A stretch of DNA of 64,000 nucleotides from Thalia democratica (Eukaryota), in contig OZ241834.1 in assembly GCA_965202585.1 (NCBI GenBank), positions 8,184,001-8,248,000 of the forward strand, in the 5' to 3' direction. This document shows, piece by piece, positions 36,125 through 61,600 of this stretch. How positions within the stretch are numbered: the stretch's first letter is position 1; each line of letters begins with the position of its first letter. The position numbers and the translations under genes were made by a program. The notes under the pieces were generated by a model. The model saw only the letters and a list, made by a program, of their open reading frames with translations. It made no database searches and was not told where the DNA came from.

Positions 36125-36661
36125 ATGGTTTTAAGCATCGACTTACTGGAAGGCAGAATGGAAAACTTTTGGTCGCTAGGTGGCAACGTTGAAACGTGCT
36201 TCTACGGGCATTTCGATCCCGATGAGGACGTGGTTGCTGTTACGTCACAAGAAGAAGACGACGTATCGGAGATGATGCGCCGCATGTCCCTCCATGGCAA
36301 CCAGAAGACCCTCTCCCGTTGCTACGGAGTGGAGAGAGTAGTGTACGAGAGGTACGAGTCGCTGAGGAGCTTCGCAAACAGATCCGTCGAACGCAACAGG
36401 GCCAGGGTGCGACAGGTGCCGACCGTGGAAGGGTGTCAGCAGTTGCTAGGTAACCTCAACCGGGACTTTATCAGGTACAAGGCCACCGGAAGCGAGCCTC
36501 TGAACCTGACCGGGGAGTTTTTGTCGTTCGCCAAAGACGCGGACCAGTTTAGGACGCCCGAAGAGCTGATAGGGGACATGAACACGATCCACGTCGCTAT
36601 TTTGCAAAAATACCTGAAAATAAGAATTCAGGAAATTTCAATGATGCATGCTTATTTTTGA
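36125..36661 (+). CDS. Uncharacterised 178-aa protein, copy A (intronless CDS, GC-rich)
   Basis: ATG-to-TGA ORF, GC-rich core, splice acceptor ctaacAG 4 nt before the ATG. Versus copy B, 8 of 9 substitutions are synonymous, which supports real coding function. Confidence 0.85.
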   Translation: MVLSIDLLEGRMENFWSLGGNVETCFYGHFDPDEDVVAVTSQEEDDVSEMMRRMSLHGNQKTLSRCYGVERVVYERYESLRSFANRSVERNRARVRQVPTVEGCQQLLGNLNRDFIRYKATGSEPLNLTGEFLSFAKDADQFRTPEELIGDMNTIHVAILQKYLKIRIQEISMMHAYF

Positions 36662-44646: not shown

Positions 44647-45612
44647 ATGCAGTCAGCTCCCATACCATCAGTTGCAGTCTCAATTGAAAAAGTAACAAAC
44701 AAAACAACTGGCGTCCAAGTGAAAGCTACCGACTTCCGGCTCACAAAGCAGCAGGGAAAACTTTTTGGCGGGAAAACTTCAGTTAGCTACCAACTGATTG
44801 TTTGCACCAATAAGGCGGCCAGTTTGGGCTGCAGGAGTGCGGAAAAAGCGCGGGAAGTTCAAGACGGAAGCGACGTGACGTTCAGTATAAAAAAATCTTA
44901 TGACGAAATACTGACGCTTCGAAATTTGCTGGACAAAAAGTTTTCCGGCACCTACTTCCCGCCCTTTCCCAAGAGTTTAGTTCAAAGCAATTCGACTTTG
45001 ATCGAGCAGCGGAACCAGGCCAGAAGTGGGGTGGAGAACATCAACTCGCTCTTCAAAATTTGCTGCGATCTGAAAAAGATCGTTTTCCAGGAATTTTTTT
45101 TGCGCTTTTTCGGGTTTAAGCTGGCAGCTGCAACGGAAGAGATGTCATCTGGAAAAAAATCGGCAGCTGATAAAAAGGAACAGGCTCAAAAGAAGCGCGA
45201 CATCTTTGACGAAGACTCATCGGATGACAGCTCCGACTTGTTTGAAGAAGAAAAAGCAGACGACGACCACGAGCTTTTCTCACAACGAGACAAAACAAAC
45301 AGTAGTGCCAGCTCCTTTAAAATGTTTGAATTTGATAAACACAAAGAAGAAAAGAAGGTTGAAAAGGTGAAAGTAAAGCAAACACACGTAGAAGATGTGG
45401 ACGAAGACCTTTCTGGCTTGCTCAGCCAATTAAAAACTGTCAAAGAATTCGATGCAAAAAGGAACGAGAAGAAAAGTTTAACAGAAAGAAAACCTGTATC
45501 AACTGCATCAGCTGAAGTGAAAGACGTAAGTGAAGGTATTGATGAGGAGAATTTGCTGGAATATCTGAACAACAACGCAGTTACAGAAGAATTAAGTTTG
45601 GACTTTGATTAG
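44647..45612 (+). CDS. HS1BP3: HCLS1-binding protein 3-like PX-domain protein, intronless CDS
   Basis: N-terminus MQSAP...TNKTTGVQV...GKLFGGKTSVSYQLIV...FSIKKSYDEI...PPFPK parallels the HS1BP3 PX domain as I recall it. Followed by an acidic DDSSDLF linker and C-terminal LLEYLNNN...LSLDFD, similar to HS1BP3 ILQYIQDH...PSLF. Confidence 0.8.
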   Translation: MQSAPIPSVAVSIEKVTNKTTGVQVKATDFRLTKQQGKLFGGKTSVSYQLIVCTNKAASLGCRSAEKAREVQDGSDVTFSIKKSYDEILTLRNLLDKKFSGTYFPPFPKSLVQSNSTLIEQRNQARSGVENINSLFKICCDLKKIVFQEFFLRFFGFKLAAATEEMSSGKKSAADKKEQAQKKRDIFDEDSSDDSSDLFEEEKADDDHELFSQRDKTNSSASSFKMFEFDKHKEEKKVEKVKVKQTHVEDVDEDLSGLLSQLKTVKEFDAKRNEKKSLTERKPVSTASAEVKDVSEGIDEENLLEYLNNNAVTEELSLDFD

Positions 45613-47689: not shown

Positions 47690-49190
47690 TTATTCTCAAA
47701 AACTTAGTTGATATATACATATAGAAATCACGGAAAATGAAAAAGAGTTAATTAGACATTGCTGCAAATCAGTACTGCTCCACGAAGGTGAACCATGGTT
47801 GAAAAAGCATAACAAAAACAGCTTTGATGTACCAATGGGAAGCTTTCATGGCGCAGAAATTTGCGAACTGGTTGGCCTATATATTTTAAATATATTGAAG
47901 AAGGAAAAGATTTTTAGAGAAGGTAACTTTGGCATATACCGTAAAGATGGTTTAGCAGTTGTGGACATTCTATCGGGACCAGATATGGAGAGAAAAGTCA
48001 AACATCTGAGAAAAGTTTTTAAAAACATTGGTTTTGATGTTACCATCGAAACCAGTCTGTTTGTAACAGACTTCCTAAATGTAACTTTAGATCTTCAAAA
48101 TGAAAGCCATAAGTCATATAGAAAACCAAATGCGCATACAGTTTATGTGAAAAGCAAGTCAAACCATCCAGAGCATGTGTTAAAACACATACCGGTCGCA
48201 GTGAATAACCGCCTCCAGAAGATTTTTAGCAGTCAAAGCATTTTCAAGGAAACAACCCAACAATACCAGGAAGCTATAAAAGAAAATGGGTGCGATCACG
48301 AATTAACCTATAGCCAAAAAAACGAGAAGGGTCAGAATAAGAAAAGAAGGAGAAAAAATAATTTATTTTTCAATGCTCCATTCTTCAAAAGCGTGGCAAC
48401 GCGGGCTGGGAAGTGCTTCCTAGAGATTGTGGACAAAAACTTTACTGAAGACCATTCATATTGTAAAGTTTTTAACAGGAAGACACTAAAAGTTTCTTAT
48501 TCCCGCATATCAAACATGAAACAACTTATAATGGCACACAATCGAAAGATGTTAGACACGCAGGACAAAGAGAGGCTAATATGTGACTGCAAAAAAACAA
48601 GAATGCCCGGTAAATGGAAGTTGCCTAATGGAAAACTTTTATATAAAGCGACAGTCATAACTGAAAACCAGACAAAGTTTTATGTTGGCTCTACTGGACT
48701 ATCGTTCAAGAATCGCTACACTAAACACAAGTACAGCTTCAAACACGAAAAACATAGAAATACGACAACTTTATTGCATTACATTTGGAAACAAAAAATA
48801 ACCAAGTTAATTTTAAAATTCACTGGGAAATACTTACAAGTACGGAAAACAAATATAGTTTAAAAAATTGATGTAAATTGTGGAATGCGGAGAATATCGA
48901 AATTTTAAAAGTTAAAAAATCTGAATCTCTAGACAAAAGAAACGAATTACAAACTGGCTGTATACATTATCGGAAACCATTTACCTAAAAACTCTGTTAA
49001 TAGTTTTGTCTAAAATCAACTAACTATTCTATTATAACGTAATAGCTAATTTTATATAATTTTATTGCTCTACTTACAAGTTTGCTTTTTATTGAATAAA
49101 ACTTAGCTGAAGACGCGTATTAAACGCAAAAACAGCTGTTCCAAAAGTTTATTTTGTGTATTTTAGTTTCAATATACATACATATATATA
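47690..49190 (+). mobile_element. 5'-truncated, decayed Penelope-like retroelement (RT C-terminus plus GIY-YIG endonuclease)
   Basis: ORF 47799-48863: FDVPMGSFHGAEICELVGLYIL (RT motif B), GIYRKDGL (YRDD with D>K, inactive), FLNVTLDL, YRKPN...SNHP thumb, and GIY-YIG region LLYKATV...FYVGST...FKNRYTKHKYSF. Frameshifts flank the ORF. Confidence 0.92.
49095..49153 (+). ncRNA. Degenerate minimal type I hammerhead ribozyme in the Penelope 3' terminal region
   Basis: CTGAAGA core at 49107, stem II gcgt-attaa-acgc, GAAA core read as AAAA, palindromic stem III AACAGCTGTT, and imperfect stem I (aaacttag / caaaagttt). Confidence 0.55.
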
Positions 49191-49271: not shown

Positions 49272-49808
49272 TCAAAAATAAGCATGCATCATTGAAATTT
49301 CCTGAATTCTTATTTTCAGGTATTTTTGCAAAATAGCGACGTGGATCGTGTTCATGTCCCCTATCAGCTCTTCTGGCGTCCTAAACTGGTCCGCATCTTT
49401 GGCGAACGACAAAAACTCCCCGGTAAGGTTCAGGGGCTCGCTTCCGCTGGCCTTGTACCTGATAAAGTCCCGGTTGAGGTTGCCTAGCAACTGCTGACAC
49501 CCTTCCACGGTCGGCACCTGTCGCACCCTGGCCCTGTTGCGTTCGACGGATCTGTTTGCGAAGCTCCTCAGCGACTCGTACCTCTCGTACACTACTCTCT
49601 CCACTCCGTAGCAACGGGAGAGGGTCTTCTGGTTGCCATGGAGGGACATGCGGCGCATCATCTCCGAAACGTCATCTTCTTCTTGTGACGTAACAGCAAC
49701 CACGTCCTCGTCGGGATCGAAATGCCCGTAGAAGCACGTTTCAACGTTGCCACCTAGCGACCAAAAGTTTTCCATTCTGCCTTCCAGTAAGTCGATGCTT
49801 AAAACCAT
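49272..49808 (-). CDS. Uncharacterised 178-aa protein, copy B (inverted paralog of 36125-36661)
   Basis: 9 nt differences from copy A in 537 nt by manual comparison, with a single T>S change (KATGSE vs KASGSE). Acceptor ctaatAG 4 nt before the ATG is retained. Confidence 0.85.
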   Translation of the reverse strand: MVLSIDLLEGRMENFWSLGGNVETCFYGHFDPDEDVVAVTSQEEDDVSEMMRRMSLHGNQKTLSRCYGVERVVYERYESLRSFANRSVERNRARVRQVPTVEGCQQLLGNLNRDFIRYKASGSEPLNLTGEFLSFAKDADQFRTPEELIGDMNTIHVAILQKYLKIRIQEISMMHAYF

Positions 49809-52800
49809 TTATCTATTAGTTTGTTTCTCAGTTTATTCTGTATTTCTTTTAATTTGAGTTTGAAAGTAAAACTGATCTGTCTATTTTTATTTCCAAATTA
49901 TTTGAAATTCTGAAATCTGACCTTATACAACTTGTTTTTAAATTTTAATATACAAGTAAAATTAATTTGGTATTTTTGAACTTTATATAAATCTGATTTT
50001 GTAAAGTTTTGTTAGAAATTAGATGGTAGCTTAAAGATTAATAAAAAAATTAGTTAAATTTACTATAAAACAATATTAAAAAAGATTTGTAATTTTTTGT
50101 TTTATTACAGAATCACACAATGTACCCTAATCATGTTTAACTGGAAATGAAACTTCCTTTAAAATCAATGTTTGTAAAAAAAAATTCACGTATTTGGTTT
50201 TGATAAATTTTGATAGTCAAAAAGAGCACTTTATACTAATCTTTTTTTCTTATTATGAGTTGCGGCTCCACTCTAAGTGAAATAACTTTCAGTCACTTTT
50301 TATAAGTAGTTTTACAACTTAAACAATCTTGTCTGAAACTTTTTTTCGTTTTAAATTTCTATAAATACTAAAAATATGTATTAAATTTAGTGAAATAGAT
50401 TTCTACAAATAAAGTTTATTAAATTTATTTTACAAAGCAAAAAGCGTTAAAAAATATTAATACAACTATTTTATTGATAGAATAAAACTGTTTTGTGAAA
50501 ATCATTAAGCTATGGACGAAAATACTAATGTTAACTAACAACAAAACATTGTTAAGCTTACAAACGTTTTATAAAACTCGCATTTAAAAAACTTTATTTT
50601 AAGTATGAAATAAATTTAAATCAATAACGTCAAAAAGTTTTTATAAAAGTAAACCAAAATAAGATCAATTTACTTTAAAAAATACAAACATAACGTAGTG
50701 TAAATTTAACTTGTATTAAAAAAACAACACAGCAAAGGAATTAAATACTTGAGTATGAATAAAAAAAGTAATTTTTGAAAGCCTACATTCCTATGACGTC
50801 GACATACGTATTTTTTGTAAAAAAATAAGTTCATGTTTAATAAAAGAAGTACTTTGTTCAAAGCAACAAATAACTATATTGAAAATTTTATAATAGTTAT
50901 ACAATGATGAGAATATTTAATACTCTATAAACACTTTTTTTTTTTGTTATACCTTATCTTTTAATTTTTTGATTGACAAAAGCTGTTCACTAAATCATTT
51001 GATTTCGTTTTCATTATTTTTAACTCTTTAACTATAGCTTTACGTAATATCACTAAGCACATTAAAACACGTATAAATTATATCATTAAAACCTTTAAAA
51101 GTATTGGTTTAAGTACTAAATATAGTATAAATATTTTCTGAGAAAGCAAACCCGTAAATTACCTCGAATTCTCGATTATATAGTAACAAAATAAAGTCGT
51201 TATAATATGCTTTAAATTCATAAATAAATAAAAAATATTTGCACGTATTTCTCAATAAAAATAAAATTATTATTTAAAGTGTTAGAAAAAATAGAACATC
51301 TTTAATTTTGATTATATGAAATTATAATTTTGACTAAAACTTCTTTAAAAACCGAATAACTAAAAAAAACTGTTTTAGTATATTATAACAAAATTTGTTT
51401 CAAACTTTGTTGGTTTATTTTAATTTCAGAAGAATTTTCTTGTATTTACCTTTTGGAACTTTATGTAATTACACGTTTTTTATTTTTGGTTTAATTGCTT
51501 TCTTCATTTGACTACTGCACAAAGTATTTATTTGTCCTTGAGCTTCAGTTACTTACACTTATTTATTTCTAGTAAGTGTAATACAAGCTAATCTAGCATA
51601 AGTTAAGTTCAAGCTATGACTTTTTTTTTGTAAATACGAGATTGTTTTGTTTTAACTTAATTTATCTTGATAATGTGTAGATAAGTTTAAATTTTCTAAT
51701 ATAACCTTTGGTGTTGCTTTAACTTATTATTAAAAGTTTGTTCGTTATTGTATTCGAACAACTTTGTTTTTTTGTGTGAAGCTAATTACTTATAATCTAT
51801 TTGTATTTTCTTTTCAGATTGCTTTAAACCAAACTGCAGCTCTCGGGTCAAGTGTCCGTAGGGTAATTTCATTAAGAACATACCTTTTAAAACAATATTA
51901 TGGTTAAAAATTACAATAAGACTCTTGATTTTAAATCTACTCTTAAATTGTCGTTTTTTCTGCTTATCTTATCTATCTATTTAGGCTGGTTATTTTATTT
52001 TAAGCCAACTGCAGCCTGCAGAATATTTATTTTTTATGTAGTCTGACCCGTGAGCAACATTTTATAAGAAAACTGGCCTAAGATTTATAAAATATTTGTA
52101 ACTTCTTCTTTAAACAATGATCTACAAACTGTGGTAATTTGAAAAAAAAAACTTTCTTACTTGAATAACGATTATAAGCTTCTAATTATTATAACTCTAT
52201 ACACCTTTAAATTTCATGACTTATATAAAAGTTGTATAAAATTTGTATTTTACTTGATAAAAATATAATTTGGATGAAGTTTTTTTAAAACGAGATTAAA
52301 TAAAATCAAAATTAGTATAAGTAATCATTACAGAAATTACGTAAAATATATTTCGTAACACTGTTTATTTCAAAATGTTTTCTAAGTAATAGTAACAAAA
52401 TAGTTTTTTTTAATACTTTAAGTAATACTATACAATAAATAGAAAAAAAAACCTAGACTATTGGATAAAGTTCCTGTCTATATATTTGAATTATTTGGTT
52501 AAAAGAATACTTTATTTAGTGTTATATTTACATAAAACTATAATATTGGATACCACAATTATTTGCTTAAACAATATTGCTCAAAGTCATGAAATTTCCA
52601 AAATTTTTGCCTTAGTTGAACTTTTCTACATAAAACACACTTCAAAAACAAATTAACATGTTATAAAATTTTTTTTAAGTAGAATTAACTCCGAAACTAA
52701 GTTTTTAAATGTATATTTAAATGCATTACTCTTCTACTTGATTTTTGTTTTTGTTAAGCATAATAAGGCAAGTAATTATGTTTTCTACAGTTATTGTGTA

Positions 52801-54173
52801 AATGGTACGGTCTTCAAATTTTGAAAATTGATGTGTAAATAATAAATGTAGTACTCATTTTTAATAGGACAAGGTAATAGGACATTCGGGTCTCAGTATT
52901 TGTTAGCTACTTACGCCTAGCTCATGGGTCGGCTGGTAACCGCAAGCGAAATAAAAAAAAATCTTTGTTGGTTGCAGTTGTAGTTTTAGTCACCTGTTTT
53001 TAATTCCCTCCAATTACACCTTAATTTATTTTTAAAATATCAGAATAAGTAGTTAAATTTAAGAAACATATTTGCTCGCGAGCCAAATCCCATTTATACT
53101 AAGAATATGCTAGCTGGCTACAGTTTGCTGATCCTTGAATCAACTTATAAACTGCGTAGTTGAACTTATTGAGCTTTTTATTGAATTATAAAGCTTTAAA
53201 TTACTTAGTCCTCAATTTTTTAGTAAAACTTTGAGTAAAAGGCTGAAGAGTAAGAATAATAAAGTTAAAAACTTATTAATGTGTAAATAAAAGTTACTGA
53301 TTGCTAATTTACTCATTTAAAAAAGTGTATAAAGTTGATAATAATTTGAAAAAATTCAATTATGAAATTACAAGTTCAAAACACTATAGTTAACCGTTTT
53401 TACAGATAATATAAAGTGACTGTACGTTTTCAAACTAAATTATTTAGATATTGTTATGACACTTTCAAATATACAAGTGAGAAAAGCAATGCAAAGTTTT
53501 TCATTTAAAAATAGCAGCTGGCAGCTAAAAACATCTACGTATTAGTACACTAGATAAGTAACTATCGTCAAACAATTATTCATCGTTGTCTAGCTACCCA
53601 GAGAAATATTTTAACAGCAAAAATAGCAACAAATTAATACTTTTCTATCATATGCAAAAGTTCGTATTACATGCATTAGTTTAAGATTACTTCCAAGAAT
53701 ATGTAATATACAGTAACAGTTTGGAAGATAAAGTCTCGTTTCAAAAGATATACATTACAATTTAAATTAGACTGTATAGTGAATATCACTTTAAAAAGAT
53801 AATTTTTCGATAGGTTTTACTTATTTTTGCCTCTTTAAAAAGAATTGAATCAATGTTTTTATTATGTTACAAACTAGGTTTAATTTGTAATGTGATATTC
53901 GTGTGAAAACGAGTTTAGCTAGATTAAAAAAACAAACATTTTTATAAGTATTAAAATCAAGTATTAGTTTTGAAATATTTTTCGTAAAATAAACAAAACA
54001 TATAATATGTTTAATCAAATTCACATGAAACGAAAAATATATGATTTAAATAAGAAATAAAGAATTGTATGTTCAGTGATAGTTAACACATCTTTATAAC
54101 TAGCGAAACAAATAATAAATGACAAAACTTTTTATTAGTGTAAGAAACATTTAAAATTATGTTAGACTATAAC

Positions 54174-54770
54174 CAGTGGCGTCGCGTGGTCACTTTGTTA
54201 GAGGGTGCTGCAGATTGACATTGTCAAATTGAAAAATGTCATAGTCTGAAACACTTAGATTTAAATCATAAAGATTTTATGAAGAAATAGAAAATTTCTT
54301 AGAAAAAAATCGAACAAATTTGTTTGATTAAATAATGAATAGAATATTAAATATAATATAAAAAAGCACATATCTTATACCCACGTACATCATCACCCTT
54401 TCTAAACAACTATAGCTACTTTTATTTTTATTTATGTCCATGTAAGTTTCTGCACTTGCACAATTATAAATTTACTAACTTAATTTTTAGATTTTTCTAA
54501 CTGTTAATAAAAAACAAAAAAGTCATGCAAGTAACTTAAAAACCGAGGTTGCCCCTGCTCGAATTTTTCCTACTCGAGTTGCTCCTGCTCGAGTTTTTCC
54601 TTTTCGAGTTGTACCTGCTCAAGTTTTTCCTGTACGAGTTGTTCTTGCTCGAGTTTTCCCTGATTGAGTTGCCCCTGTTTGAGTTTTTCCTGCTCGAGTT
54701 GCATCTACTCGAGTTGCCCTTGTTCCAGTTTTCTTTGCTTGAGTTTCTTCTGTTCGAGTTCAACTTGTCT
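54174..54770. mobile_element. Second member of the CAGTGGCG hAT-like family carrying the 15-bp array, opposite orientation to 8701-9312; right end undefined
   Basis: CAGTGGCGTCGCGTGGT at 54174 matches the reverse complement of the 9312 terminus. It is followed by the reverse-complement array at 54548-54760. Confidence 0.6.
54548..54760 (-). repeat. 15-bp minisatellite (plus strand about GAGTTG/TTTCCTGCTC), about 14 units
   Basis: 15-nt periodicity, reverse complement of the 9013-9247 array family. Confidence 0.95.
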
Positions 54771-55559
54771 TATTGTGCTCGCGTTGTAGCAAATTTCAAC
54801 AACGATCATGATTTAAATCACATGGTGCTGCAAGTTCATGCAGCTCTAGATACAAACTTTTCAACATATTTTGTATTAAAAACTTGTAAACGTTTAAAAT
54901 GCAGCTGACACAGATTGAGCTTGCAGCTCTAATTTTACGAACATTTGAACATCAAATATAAAATTTGAAAACAAATAATTTAGCAGGGAATTTAACGACG
55001 TTTATGTACATATTTGGCTGTATTTTTTGTACAATTTCATGATAAATTAACTTTATTTTTTATAAGGTAATATAAATATTTTTATATCATTTTAAAGCTC
55101 AATTCCTCAGCTTAAAAAAATTTTTTTTTGACTGATTTGGGGTTGTACAGCTGAAGTAGGGGCATGTTTAAAGCCACGTGTTTAAAAGTAGTAAGTAAGT
55201 CAAGTTTTTTATAATAACAGTTTTTGAAAATATTTATGTACAATGTCATTTCAAAACTGCACTTAGATATGCTTTAGACATACTTAAGTTACATTTCTAT
55301 TAAAATAAAAAAAAAATTAAAAAATGTTTAGACTGTTTTATTATAACTTGATAGTTATAAAAATAAACGGTACTAAAAAAGGTATAACAGCGATATAAAT
55401 GTTACTTGTAACAAACTTAAATTTATTTTATTTCAAATTGAAATATCATGTGCTTAACTGAAAAATATATTTCAAAATAAAGTAATGTTACAGAAAAAGG
55501 ATTTAAATGAAAAACGTGTTTTTAACGAAAACTCAGAAATAAATGAAATTTAAAAAGCA

Positions 55560-58279
55560 ATGGATTGCAGCACTTTTTTAAGTTTTTGTTTTCAGTACAG
55601 CTATATAGAATTTCAGGTAAAATGTTTTAGTTTTTAAAAGTAATTGGTAATTCAAGCACAATTCTCTCAAATGTATAACACCAGTATAAAAACAAAAAAG
55701 TGCGAAGTAATCAGTTACTTTCCAAATTTAATTTTTTCTGACGATTTCGTTTAATTTTGTTAAATTTTGAAATGTTAACGTCTGTCAGCAAAGTAAGTTA
55801 AATATATGGCTTAATTTTTAAAAAATTGTTTAATAAGTAACATTTAGAATCAATTATTTGTTTTTAATCAATTCAAAAAAAAAATTCATTCCAAATTTCA
55901 TACTTAAAATAGCTGCTGTATTTTTACAATGTGTAAATACTTGTTATTTAAGTGCGGCTAAGTTTATAAATGCGAACAAATAGCTAAAACAGAGCTAACA
56001 AACAGATTCTGAAAAAAAAAAAATAATTTAATGTACTAATCATTAATCTAATAAGGTTTATGAATCTTTTCAGGCGTACTTCATATACTTGCTTTTTCAC
56101 TTGTTAGCGCCAAAAGTTGCCAATGCTGGATACACGAGGTAATTAAAATCATTTGTTTTTTTTACAATTTTAAAGTCTTTTAAAAGTACAGTATTAAGGC
56201 TATGAGAAACTTTATCAAAAGTATATCGTTACCTTAATCATGTTTTAGTACATATTTAAAAAATACTAAGCATGGCAAATATTTTTCTATTGTCAATTTG
56301 ATTAAGATAAACATTAATTAATCGAGTTCAAGTTTTAAAATCGTTAATGCTTACTAACAGGTAATAAGGAAAGAACTTTCAAAAGTTTTCCTTTCAATTA
56401 GAATAGCGTGAAAGTATAATTATTTGTTGAATAAACAGTTTACTTGTTGGTAAGCTTTTGAGCACTTTCAAAACATTAGTACTGTTCAACATAGTGTTTA
56501 TTTTTATAAACAAAAACATGCCAAAGCTTGTGCAGTTTTTGATAAATTTCATCAATGAAAACTATTTATATACTTTTAAACTTTAGAACTTAAGTAAAAG
56601 TAAGTATCTGTTTAAATTATTCATTTAATAGAACAAATAAGGCCGATAAAGAATACACTTTTGCAATTCACAAAAAAATAGTCGCCGGTGGAAATCTAGT
56701 CATGAACAAAATACCTGTAAGTTAAAACTAAAAAAAGTTGTATTAAAAAATTTTTATAAATATTTATACAAGGTAGTGTTTAATAATTTTTCTTTTTATA
56801 AAAGTTTTGAACTAATTTTTACATTTGCTTGCTTAAAATGTTATTTGCTTTTGATATAGTTTAAACTTTATAGGTAGTTATGAAACACAAATTTATAACT
56901 AAATATTTTATCATATCGACTTACAGTATATTGATAAAAAGTCGTCAGGTTAGTTAAGTAATACAATAAAATGGTATAAATTTGCTTCAGTAACTTTATG
57001 TTTATTTAAGTTTCAACAGCATTTTTTAGATGCTAAACGATCCAATTTAAATGTTTTCACACTTAACACACAAATATATTTTATGTTAATTATAATTTTT
57101 ATAAATTTTTACTATTATAGTCATATTAGTTAAATTTGCTTCCTGATAGTATTATAGTTTGTACTGGCATTAACAATTTTACTTATTGATGCAAAAAGTC
57201 ATAGTCAAAAATTTTTACAAGTTTATTAAAATAAAAACAAAATTAAGACTTCTGGTTAATATAAACATTATTAAAAATAAATATTTACAGATGAATTGCC
57301 ACGATATAGTGAAAAGTGGAATTTACTGTCCTTACCACAAGAATTTCAACAAAAATTATTTTCCTAACTCCTTCTACAAATGGCCACTAAACAAAAGAAG
57401 CACTGCACCTTGGGTTCAAATGTTAGAAATATGTTTTTATTAATAATGTCTGATTTAACTTCATTTGGTTAAAAAAAAAGTTTTTACCAAGACGTAATTT
57501 TATTACCAGCAAGTTTGTTAACAACAGCTACAATAAAATAATAAACAAGCAATAAAGCAAACTTATTAAATTTTTTTCACTTGTATTACAGACAGTTAGT
57601 TACCTTTTAGATTATCTTCAATTCAAGTGAAAATAGTCCTTATAAGTTTTACTAATAAGAATAAAAAGAACTCAAACAGACACTGAACTAAAACTACTAA
57701 ACTATCAAATTAAACACCGGCTCAAATAAAAAATCAGACTAGGTTCAAATTTAATTGGGCTCAAATGAAACTAAATTTAAAAAAAATTAACAAACTTAAG
57801 TTTCACTTAAACATTAATAAATGAACATTAGCTTAACAGTTAAAATTAAAAAAAAAATTATATTACAATTTATACATAAATTAGATGAACTCTGTATAGC
57901 GCCAATTTTTTTTTTGTATTATATTTACTTTTATTTAAAGTCTTCGAATTGATAGTATTTTTCCAATAACCTTGAATATTTAACTTCAGAAAAAAAATAA
58001 AATTATCGGTTTTTATAGCTTTATCAATAAGCACAACAATGAAAAGTTTAACCTTAAAAAAAAAAACTAAAGTTACTTAACACAAGCGTAAGTATTTAAA
58101 CTATTTTCAACTCATAGTCAAGTTAAAAACACACTTCAAATATCATACTAGTAAAAACTCGAATAAAAATAACTTGAACAGAAACTCAACTAACACTATT
58201 AAAAAAAAAAAAAAACAGGGGTTTTGTTTTAACAGCAAAATGTCAAAAAAATTCTACTTGGCATTATGTTAACAGTGTA

Positions 58280-58333
<54 letters not shown>

Positions 58334-58629
58334 GATATTTAAACAATAAAAATTTATTTTTGTATAACTTACCTTATATGAAATATAGATAAAACTAATA
58401 CAGAAACCAGATGAACACTGAAAGGCGCCCTCCAGTGATCGGGTGGTCGTGTTGCGCGTGTCGCCACTGTGTGGTGCACCATCGCACCAATTCAACGTTC
58501 ACGGCTGACAGGAGCAGGTTCAGTTACACCATGCCGAGTTTCATCCAGGTTGAACGTGTTGGGAGCGGGGAAGAATATTTGGAGGTGCAACCCGTGGGAT
58601 GCACTTGCGGAGCTCCTAGGATCCAATGA
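55560..58629 (+). CDS. Interleukin-17-like cystine-knot cytokine, 5 coding exons, about 187 aa
   Basis: Exons 55560-55616, 56074-56138, 56632-56716, 57291-57421 and 58404-58629 join GT-AG in phase (564 nt). C-terminal half NKRSTAPWVQINQMNTERRPPVIGWSCCACRHCV...EYLEVQPVGCTC has IL-17 motifs with the right spacing (RSTSPW-x8-ERYP, CxCxxC, VGCTC). Hydrophobic leader AYFIYLLFHLLAPKVANAG. The last two exons are much more secure than exon 1. Confidence 0.85.
58283..58328. repeat. (TA)23 microsatellite in the last intron of the IL-17-like gene
   Basis: Perfect TA run ending about 75 nt before the acceptor at 58403. Confidence 0.97.
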
Positions 58630-61600
58630 AGATCTAATCAAGATCTTCTTCATATTTTATCTGAATCTTAAACAATTTGTTCACTTTTTCAATATTTTGA
58701 AACTTATTCCCACGATTCAGTGAAGAATGATCTAATTTTTTATTTTTATAAGTTTATAGATCTTTTGTTATCCTTTAATTTTTGTAGGTTACTGGTTGTT
58801 TTATAAGAAACAGTTTTCCTGTAAAATTATTAATCTAGAATTCAATACAAATATTATTTTTAACTGAGACATTAATTCATCTAATAGAACTTTTAACTTA
58901 ATTTTCTTTCTTTTGCTTGCTGTTATTTGCGATATTATTTATTTGTAAAAATATAGTCTAGGATTTTATCTAAATGTTTTCTTGTTAATTAAAAAACTTA
59001 TGGTTGAACACTTTACAAAGAAACTTTGTCACAAATTAACTTACAATCATTTGATTGGTTTATCACTTGTAAGTTTTTAACGAGAAGTGTTTTTTTTTAC
59101 TAGTGGTAGTGTTTATTTATCATCTTCTACTTATTTTAATCTTTTGTGTTTTTGAGATATGTTTTATAATGCCTTAAAAAACTTCGCTTAGACATCTGTT
59201 TTATTGTAAAATGTTATGTGAACAAAATAAACAAAATATATTTTTACTTTTAATTGTGTATGGTAAAAACTATCTTTTTTGATAAAATATGTTTTAGTAT
59301 TTAACGTACCTTACTGTAAAACTTACTAATAAGTACTTAAAGAATTATACAAACATGTTTTGCATTATGTTAAAGTATAGTTTTTAACTTGTAAATTAAA
59401 ATCAATCAAACAAATTTATATTTCGTTTAAACTTTAAAGCATGAAATTTAACTGTTGTACTTTCTTTTGTTAAGTGAACAATTTAGCTAGCTGCCAAAAT
59501 ATAATTTTTAATTTAGGCCAACATAACTATTCTTTCTAAAAACTCTTAAGTAGTGGTTTATTGCATACGATAAAGTAATCGACATATTACATTTTTTCAA
59601 AGGACCTGTTGTACAGAAAGACCTTTAGGACTTTTTTACTTAAAATTTTTAATGCCATGAAATAAAGAAAAACACCATATATTTTACTATAAAAAACGTG
59701 TATTTAAAAAATTCTATAGCTATAAGCAACAAATATATACATAAGGAGAAAAACAAAACAGAATGTGACATTAAAAATAACTTAACATGAAAAGTAAAGG
59801 AAGCATTAATGTTAAGCTCTTGCCTACTTTGTTGTTTTAAGATGTAAAAAAAATTAAAAACTTCAAAGTAAAGATACATGATTTTCAAGAATTTTTTTTT
59901 TTTATCGTTTTGAACTAAAGCACTTGACAACTGAAAATTTGAATTTATATCTTTAACGATATAATATAACAACAAAAACCTCTTTAAGAACACAAACAAA
60001 AATACACGTAAACATTTTACTTAAATAAGTCTTTTTAAAGAAGGAAATATGCACAATCTCTGCTTTAGACTTTTTTAGTAGTTAGTAGTAAACTTACGTA
60101 CATAAAAGAAGTAACAACTTTATAAATAAAACTTTAATAAATTAAAATACTAACTTTACTAACATATTTAGATATTATATATATATACATATAGGTTAAT
60201 TAGTTTATATATAAACTTTTGAATTTAAAGCTATAACAAAAACGTGTTTATAAATCATGAATAATTAGTTTAGTCTATTGAACACGATAAAGAATTTGAC
60301 GCTTAAAAATATGGTTAAAGAAAGAACTTTTGGAAATCTACAGTCCATTTTTCAGGTTACCGACTTTGAGCTTTTTAAATAACATTTTTTCAAATAAAAC
60401 TCATCTTTTGGAAGAAAAAAATGTATAGCCTTTAACTAAGAATGACTTAACATACGTTGAATAAAAAGTTTTTAATATTAAGGAAAAAAAAGCTAGTAAT
60501 AAACTCAGAATAATTTTCTTTTTATAAACTGATACAACATGGTATAGACGTAAAATATAAAATGTATGTGCTTCGAATTGTACTTTTTTATTTGGGCTAT
60601 TTAATTATTACAACTGTAAATATATGTCTGATAATTTTATGTTCGAGGAAACAACCAAAAAAAATAAACTTAGACCAGTTTAACTGTAGAAAATTTATAC
60701 ATCGATAAAGTTTTGTTATAAGCGAGTTATATAAACAAAACAATACATGTTCGCAGTTAAGCGGATATATTTTAAAACACGCCAGCAGTAACGTATTTTA
60801 AAATAACAAAGTTATTAACTACGGATTTTTAAACCTGTTCCTTTTGTTTTAATTAGAAAACTCTAAAAAATCTTGAAAAAAATGTTTACTGTTTTATGTT
60901 CCATGAAGTGTTTTATATTTTTTAGTATACTTAAAAACAAATAAGATAAAAACATTTTATCGCTTTTACAATGCTTTTATAATCGGTCATAGTATATCAT
61001 ATTAAACTAAATGAATAAAAAGTAAGCAAAAAAAAAGAAAAACTTTTATGCGTTTTTATTTAAATTAGAAAAGCTTTGCATAGTTTTTTTAGTTAATTCA
61101 ATTAAATTTATGTAAAAGATAAATAAATATATAAAACGATTGCTCAAACTGTATGATTTACTCTAATTAGGTTTATATATACTCTTATTAGCATTTGTTT
61201 AGTAAACAAACAGTTATTATAAATTAAAAGCTGTTAACTTTTATGCATTTAAAAAATTATCATTTAAATGTGGTTTTATAAATAAAAACTGTTATCGATT
61301 TGTTTTGCAGTTACTTATTGTCAAAATCTAATTTAACTTTTTATGTAAAACCTCCGTAACCTTTACCGCCCTGAACTAAACTAACCTTGTAATTTTATAT
61401 AAAAAAAACTTCAATAAGTTTAACGTACATTGAGTATAAAATTAACAAGATCTGAATATTTTATTCACAATAAAAGTAAAAACAAGCAAGTAAAACACAA
61501 AAAATACTTCATTGGCTGTATCAAGTTACTTTAGCTAGTAAAATGATATATTCAAAAAATACTAAATTCAAGAAGAAGATAATCGAGCTTTAAAACTTCT

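Follow-up and report, generated by a model that had tools for sequence, protein, structure and literature searches.

A five-exon gene for a probable interleukin-17-family cytokine in the tunicate Thalia democratica

The stretch of Thalia democratica DNA analysed here (the window) comprises 64,000 nucleotides (nt), corresponds to C10:8184001-8248000 of an 802 Mb genome, and in all likelihood contains a gene for the precursor of a tunicate cytokine of the interleukin-17 (IL-17) family. The gene occupies positions 55772-58629 of the forward strand (coordinates are window positions unless prefixed by a contig), where five exons specify a precursor of 175 amino acids (aa). The curated model includes a 21-nt first coding exon that was overlooked both by gene finders and by an earlier sequence-based reading of the locus (the original prediction). 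The exon structure of the gene, its family membership, its fold, its conservation, and the transcription of an orthologue in a relative have been demonstrated. The open reading frame (ORF) list of the window gives mere fragments of the spliced gene, as originally stated.

Family membership and predicted fold

Profile searches with the gene, its orthologue and its relatives place it in the IL-17 family. Against the Pfam IL17 profile (PF06083, gathering cut-off 24 bits) the orthologue of the window gene scores 26.0 bits over profile positions 1-79, above the cut-off, and other related proteins pass at 31-70 bits. An independent profile was built from nine foreign proteins, each of which scores 49-70 bits on Pfam IL17. 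On this profile the joined exons 4 and 5 score 51.0 bits and exon 5 alone 35.8 bits, while the best of 300 shuffles reaches 6.1 bits. Exon 4 adds about 15 bits, as expected if its RSTAPW motif opens the IL-17 domain. A profile of the last exon finds a sole match in the PDB, IL-17A, at an E value of 0.07, with the R.P, C-x4-C, serine and VGCTC elements in register.

Structure prediction points the same way. The AlphaFold2 (AF2) model of the orthologue has a predicted local distance difference test (pLDDT) score of 78, rising above 90 in the core; IL-17A, IL-17F and IL-25 account for all of its 50 best Foldseek matches, with E values from 5e-5. The AF2 model of exon 5 of the window gene has a pLDDT of 83, and its top 50 PDB matches are likewise all IL-17 proteins, with template-modelling (TM) scores of 0.61-0.73 and root-mean-square deviations of 2.6-3.9 Å; a search of the ESM Atlas for look-alikes of exon 5 gave no usable match. 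Human IL-17A, IL-17F and IL-25 (PDB 4HR9, 8DYG, 5HI3, 3JVF and 7UWJ) have the same fold, with target-normalised TM scores of up to 0.79 at 22-29% identity, and the RSTAPW, ERRP, C-x4-C, serine and VGCTC elements of the window protein lie in register with human NRSTSPW, ERYP, CRHLGC, serine and VGCTC. Unlike these human proteins, the window protein has two extra cysteines in a CCxCxxC block and two in its N-terminal segment, and the sequence match between them is weak. The original prediction of a spliced IL-17-family gene is thus borne out by Pfam (through the orthologue and paralogues), by the nine-protein profile and by the predicted folds.

A ligand of a different cystine-knot family that resembles IL-17, such as Trunk/PTTH, Spaetzle/neurotrophin, Noggin or the like, is a very improbable alternative. 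In its favour, IL-17 has Trunk as its nearest relative, and IL-17 receptors are bound by certain hormones of the neurotrophin-like type (PMC11087794); the match to vertebrate IL-17A is also weak. Against it, IL17 was the sole Pfam family returned for exon 5 at E values of up to 10, for the orthologue at E values of up to 1, and for all relatives tested. Noggin and Trunk/PTTH, with which a comparison had been proposed in the original prediction, were absent, as were Spaetzle and NGF, both from the Pfam matches and from the top 50 structural matches of the two models, and the register of the RS.SPW-type, R.P, C-x4-C and VGCTC motifs also argues for IL-17.

A homodimer, as in human IL-17s, is predicted for the mature chain of the orthologue. 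The interface score (ipSAE) is 0.69, against 0.00 for the best of three controls, with a contact agreement between runs of at least 94% and a partner pLDDT of at least 77. In calibration this mark was reached by 21 of 30 solved homodimers and by none of 23 solved single chains. The pass may, however, come from the predictor's memory of solved IL-17 dimers.

Exon structure and transcript evidence

The gene model is best appreciated by comparison with two related sequences, a duplicate in the same genome and an orthologue in another organism. The duplicate is an inverted, near-identical copy 152 kb away (C10:8394553-8395499), in which the peptides of exons 5 and 4 are 99% and 98% identical, respectively, to those of the window gene. 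The orthologue (P0004, 198 aa) was found by a full-library HMMER search with the last-exon profile, and is encoded in an uninterrupted frame on an intron-free 920-nt JGI contig from a related organism. A search of a collection of 5.8 billion sequences with the orthologue as query returned only the orthologue itself, and no protein matching the window gene.

All five exons lie on the forward strand, and exons 2-5 have canonical splice sites. Exon 1 (55772..55792) consists of the start codon and six further codons (MLTSVSK) and ends at a phase-0 donor, GTAAGT. Exon 2 (56074..56138) encodes the hydrophobic stretch at the centre of the signal peptide as well as the predicted cleavage site, between VANA and a glycine. 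At a nucleotide identity of 62%, its counterpart in the duplicate shares its length of 65 nt and its open hydrophobic frame, and both splice sites (acceptor TTTTCAG, donor GAG|GTAA) are retained. Exon 3 (56632..56716) encodes the N-terminal segment of the mature protein, with a KEYTFA...GG.L motif that is also present in paralogues on C8. Exon 4 (57291..57421) contributes a pair of N-terminal cysteines (C...CPY) and the opening of the IL-17 domain (NKRSTAPW), and ends at a phase-2 donor, GTTAGA, which has the same sequence in the duplicate. Exon 5 (58404..58629) encodes the remainder of the IL-17 cystine-knot domain (ERRP, CCACRHC, the invariant serine and VGCTC) and the stop codon. Intron 4 includes an (AT)n microsatellite at 58285-58330, where the contigs of the sequencing runs break.

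Alignment of the orthologue's contig to the window provides transcript evidence for this model. The contig aligns as successive blocks, with contig positions 101-166, 167-221, 237-368 and 371-582 corresponding to window positions 56073-56138, 56647-56701, 57291-57422 and 58407-58618. Since the blocks are adjacent and their ends coincide with the predicted exon ends (the first terminates exactly at the end of exon 2, 56138), the contig represents a processed transcript of the orthologue. Over 174 residues, counted from the methionine of MLLHVNM, the 175-aa model and P0004 share 70% identity, and the sole gap is one of 5 residues at the exon 2/3 junction, where the orthologue's exon 3 is shorter by 5 codons at its 5′ end. 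The first bases of the contig, ACATGGGG, resemble what we take to be the tail of a template-switch oligo; if so, the very first ATG of P0004 is an adapter artefact. The ATG that follows it is the one that begins MLLHVNM.

Placement of the first exon was the point on which the earlier model had to be revised. The five exons listed originally, starting at 55560, are bordered by AG and GT and can be joined in frame into 564 nt, encoding the 187-aa peptide that was reported; exons 2-5 of that list stand, and its exon 1 does not. That first exon (55560..55616) is rejected as coding sequence and is probably part of the upstream or promoter region. Its ATG is missing from the duplicate, which also carries a 3-nt deletion and has AT at the position of the donor GT; a G55617A difference in DNA sequencing run X3 destroys the donor; and the exon has no counterpart in the reading frame of the orthologue. 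For the exon at 55772-55792, by comparison, the duplicate retains the ATG, the length and the GTAAGT donor (its peptide is MLLSVKV), and in the orthologue's cDNA MLLHVNM is fused directly to the counterpart of exon 2, matching the revised exon. With this first exon, both C10 copies are complete 175-codon frames with all eight splice sites intact. The mature protein is the same with either first exon because the predicted cleavage site lies within exon 2.

Run X3 is labelled as a second organism. It covers 55400-58800 at 90-99% identity and may come from a close relative or a divergent haplotype; it carries two changes within exon 5, of which 58484 G>C is non-synonymous (arginine to proline) and 58605 T>A is synonymous.

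At the revised N-terminus, a basic n-region is followed by a 12-residue hydrophobic core and then by an A-x-A cleavage site, a pattern that is kept in the duplicate and the orthologue and on which the protein would be secreted. Upstream of the start codon, a 17-nt block (55681..55697, forward strand) is identical in both C10 copies, whereas its flanks are about 67% identical. It includes TATAAAA at 55685-55691, 81-87 nt upstream of the start codon at 55772, and may be the core promoter. Other approaches to the 5′ end were uninformative. Alignment of the orthologue's 5′ untranslated region to the window was colinear, with a score of 55 that is not above those of shuffled sequences (mean 46, maximum 66), and enumeration of 5′ exons in a C8 paralogue was not decisive, given the many spurious hydrophobic frames in AT-rich DNA. 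The genome is not enriched in a 21-nt sequence taken from the 5′ end of that cDNA (2 matches, against 3 for the control), which gives no evidence of a spliced leader. The cDNA here is that of the orthologue.

Several observations weigh against the assignment of an expressed, secreted IL-17 to this locus. Taken by itself, exon 5 scores 15.4 bits on Pfam IL17 (E 0.025, profile positions 11-79), below the cut-off, and the models of the full-length fold and of the dimer are those of the 70%-identical orthologue and not of the window protein. The GTTAGA donor of exon 4 is weak, and the signal peptide was assigned by eye. Transcript support, including that for the 57421>58404 junction, comes from another organism and is therefore indirect. 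Searches of sequencing runs for RNA from the locus in Thalia democratica yielded DNA-like runs and one marine metatranscriptome (7% of sampled words), with no RNA coverage of the locus and no meaningful junctions; the three runs that do cover the locus are DNA, because the introns are covered too.

Tunicate origin and the chordate-type cystine knot

The original prediction had assigned the window to a probable hydrozoan, and had taken from this an IL-17-family signal in an early-branching animal. The mitochondrial code refutes the first claim. The COX1 gene on contig C1833 (8315-9631) has 34 AGA/AGG codons, all of which are sensible as glycine and which include the invariant glycines of the GGGDP, FFGHPEVY and LPGxG motifs. 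COX1 reads correctly only with the ascidian mitochondrial code (table 13), and the genome is therefore that of a tunicate; in cnidarians AGA and AGG specify arginine. The nearest named homologues of the window gene are 'interleukin-17A-like' proteins of the ascidian Styela clava. With the genome being that of a tunicate, the early-branching significance falls as well. Searches of the genome for cellulose synthase and GH6 as tunicate markers gave no matches, a negative that carries no weight when searches go exon by exon. Broken copies of COX1, interrupted by many stops, occur on C4 (56.84-56.94 Mb) and C757, and are probably nuclear insertions of mitochondrial DNA.

Taken as a whole, the reading in which a 187-aa IL-17-like protein starting at 55560 gives a hydrozoan a vertebrate-like knot has almost nothing left to recommend it. 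The in-frame joining of the exons listed for it, with their AG/GT borders, and an AT-rich genome (25% GC) like that of Hydra are compatible with it, but the COX1 code, the Styela clava relatives and the loss of the 55560 start from the duplicate, run X3 and the orthologue all speak against it. A vertebrate-like IL-17 would be a surprise in a hydrozoan; in a tunicate this type of knot is the rule.

The cysteines of the protein conform to that rule. The mature protein has eight (C60, C70, C117, C118, C120, C123, C167 and C169), and the CCxCxxC motif and the two N-terminal cysteines that were originally noted are present. C118/C123 and C167/C169 align to knot cysteines 2, 3, 5 and 6 of IL-17A and are invariant in 17 family members; C118-x4-C123 lies in strand 2 and C167-x-C169 at the C-terminus, an arrangement that fits knot pairs 2/5 and 3/6. 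Knot cysteines 1 and 4 are absent, as the original prediction held: their positions are taken by Ala96 in RSTAPW (serine or threonine in paralogues) and by Ser141, which is invariant in the family. In the invertebrate relatives that were aligned with them, the motif is CPW and the partner position is a cysteine. Tunicate and vertebrate IL-17s are all of the 'T2' type, in which knot cysteines 1 and 4 are replaced, by Ser/Ser in vertebrates (PMC11087794), and the APW feature is expected because tunicate IL-17s are known to be without these two cysteines (PMC11087794).

In the model favoured here, the precursor would lose a signal peptide of about 25 residues (exon 1 and most of exon 2) by cleavage after VANA, giving a protein of about 150 aa. 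Its C-terminal 85 or so residues, from the end of exon 4 and exon 5, have the chordate-type IL-17 cystine-knot fold, with two knot disulfides, C118-C167 and C123-C169, whose pairing is suggested by alignment. C60, C70, C117 and C120 probably tie the N-terminal segment to the core, in the manner of the extra CxC cysteine in IL-17B to IL-17E. The mature protein would then act as a homodimer that binds single-pass SEFIR-domain receptors, both the dimer and the receptor use being projected by analogy with the family, and the same analogy would extend to any immune role.

Among characterized systems, the ascidian IL-17s of Ciona and Styela clava resemble the window gene in being of tunicate origin and in having a chordate-type knot without cysteines 1 and 4. 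The Styela clava proteins (XP_039259873.1 and its cluster) share C...CPY, [ST]PW, CCxCxxC and VGCTC and pass Pfam IL17, but these ascidian proteins have only about 19-25% identity to the orthologue of the window gene. In Ciona intestinalis/robusta, IL-17-1, -2 and -3 are induced by lipopolysaccharide (Vizzini et al. 2015, cited in PMC8353272), and a later survey lists 7 Ciona IL-17 sequences in 6 clusters (PMC8353272). The family to which the window gene belongs comprises about 30 loci, compared with these 3-7 in Ciona, and unlike ascidian IL-17 genes the window gene has a last exon that is strikingly GC-rich within a 25% GC genome.

Family expansion and receptor-like genes

The locus adds a gene to a known family; the points of some interest are confined to the family's expansion, which has reached about 30 loci, and to the last exons of its members, which are GC-rich and near-identical. 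A Pfam IL17 profile search of the genome gave 26 exon-sized matches above the cut-off, at 26-42 bits, which cluster on C5 (17.09-17.36 Mb) and C8 (17.58-17.78 Mb), with others elsewhere. A profile built from 17 last exons identified 30 loci, of which 3 are interrupted by an in-frame stop. At least 26 of the last exons remain intact, and tandem and inverted clusters of the loci occur on C5, C8, C10, C1 and C6. Searches with the exon 4 and exon 5 peptides located both exons, ordered and oriented alike, at many of these loci. The pair with its intron phase is kept in about 25 of the 30, and in more than 20 paralogues the last exon is preceded by an exon homologous to exon 4. In every paralogue examined, an acceptor plus one base precedes the first full codon of exon 5, and the position and phase of this intron are therefore conserved family-wide.

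Within the family, the window gene is one of the two C10 copies in a subfamily of six loci, one of which is a pseudogene; the other close relatives are two copies on C8 (36.76 Mb) and two on C1 (77.14-77.18 Mb), one of the latter with in-frame stops. The C10 copies belong to an inverted segmental duplication of at least 6.5 kb (window 52348-58867 against C10:8391500-8400500), in which identity climbs from about 67% on the 5′ side of the gene to 85-99% on the 3′ side. Between the copies, exon 5 has a nucleotide identity of 99.1%, exon 4 of 96.2% and exon 3 of 90.6%, compared with 67-85% in introns and flanks, and the last exon is their most similar part. Of the differences across exons 3-5, 7 are synonymous and 6 non-synonymous, while the introns have diverged by 15-33%.

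Another alternative is that the window gene is a silent or decaying copy, a young pseudogene that looks intact while the other C10 copy or other family members are the ones expressed. This is unlikely, although it carries more weight than the other alternatives considered here. It would fit with the run searches, which produced no RNA evidence for Thalia democratica, and with the in-frame stops in 3 of 30 last exons, including that of the C1 subfamily member; moreover, the C10 copies are too alike in exons 4-5 to show selection on each separately. What speaks for a functional gene is that in neither copy is the 175-codon frame or any of the eight splice sites disrupted, that the exons are far more conserved than the introns, and that the signal-peptide exons, which have diverged, remain open and hydrophobic.

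Base composition sets the last exon apart from the rest of the gene. Exon 5 has a GC content of 55%, the other exons 34-43%, the introns about 21%, and the window and genome as a whole 25%; GC at third codon positions is 0.62 in exon 5 and 0.73 in the orthologue. The last exons of all family members are GC-rich, at 55-62% where the ORF is mostly exon. Gene conversion, possibly GC-biased, might be behind these GC-rich and near-identical last exons, which is offered here as a guess.

A wider interpretation, plausible although we would give it slightly less than an even chance, is that a lineage-specific expansion has produced about 30 IL-17 loci in this pelagic tunicate, with last exons kept near-identical by ongoing gene conversion while signal-peptide exons drift. 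The products would form a diversified set of mucosal cytokines in a mucus-net filter feeder, and orthologues of the subfamily would be transcribed in open-ocean plankton. Expansions of IL-17 are known from the purple sea urchin (26-35 genes), Octopus bimaculoides (31 genes), and mussels and oysters (PMC8353272). The resemblance lies in tens of tandemly clustered IL-17 genes, divided among several subfamilies, in a marine filter feeder or grazer; the difference is that the urchin, Octopus and bivalve proteins are of the six-cysteine invertebrate type, whereas the family described here is of the four-cysteine chordate type and lies within the sister group of the vertebrates. If the interpretation is correct, no chordate surveyed in the literature cited would have a larger IL-17 repertoire. 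The presence of about 30 IL-17 genes, together with at least two receptor-like genes, adds the vertebrate sister group to the independent expansions of this family, and supplies candidates for the study of mucosal immunity in filter-feeding chordates. A literature search found no paper connecting IL-17 with pelagic tunicates.

SEFIR receptor-like genes, for which a genome search had been suggested, do exist in the genome, where a SEFIR profile search matches three loci. Two are single-exon ORFs of 575-584 aa, with SEFIR scores of 48 and 35 bits (C8:47636658-47637092 and C5:32080312-32080743), and in both an N-terminal hydrophobic segment precedes an ectodomain of about 300 aa that is rich in cysteines and sequons; a single transmembrane segment follows, with a basic stop-transfer sequence, and then the SEFIR domain. 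By sequence, this is the layout of an IL-17 receptor. The third match (C10:13358775) is broken, with two stops.

Elsewhere in the window, a short-period repeat at 54536-54908 has a GC content of about 42% and long low-complexity ORFs on both strands, and forms no exon of the IL-17 gene. A 178-aa ORF without a Pfam match occurs as two inverted copies (36125-36661 on the forward strand and 49272-49808 on the reverse strand) that differ by one residue. Between them lie a 321-aa ORF containing a PX domain (44647-45612) and a 354-aa ORF (47799-48863), the latter again with no Pfam match.

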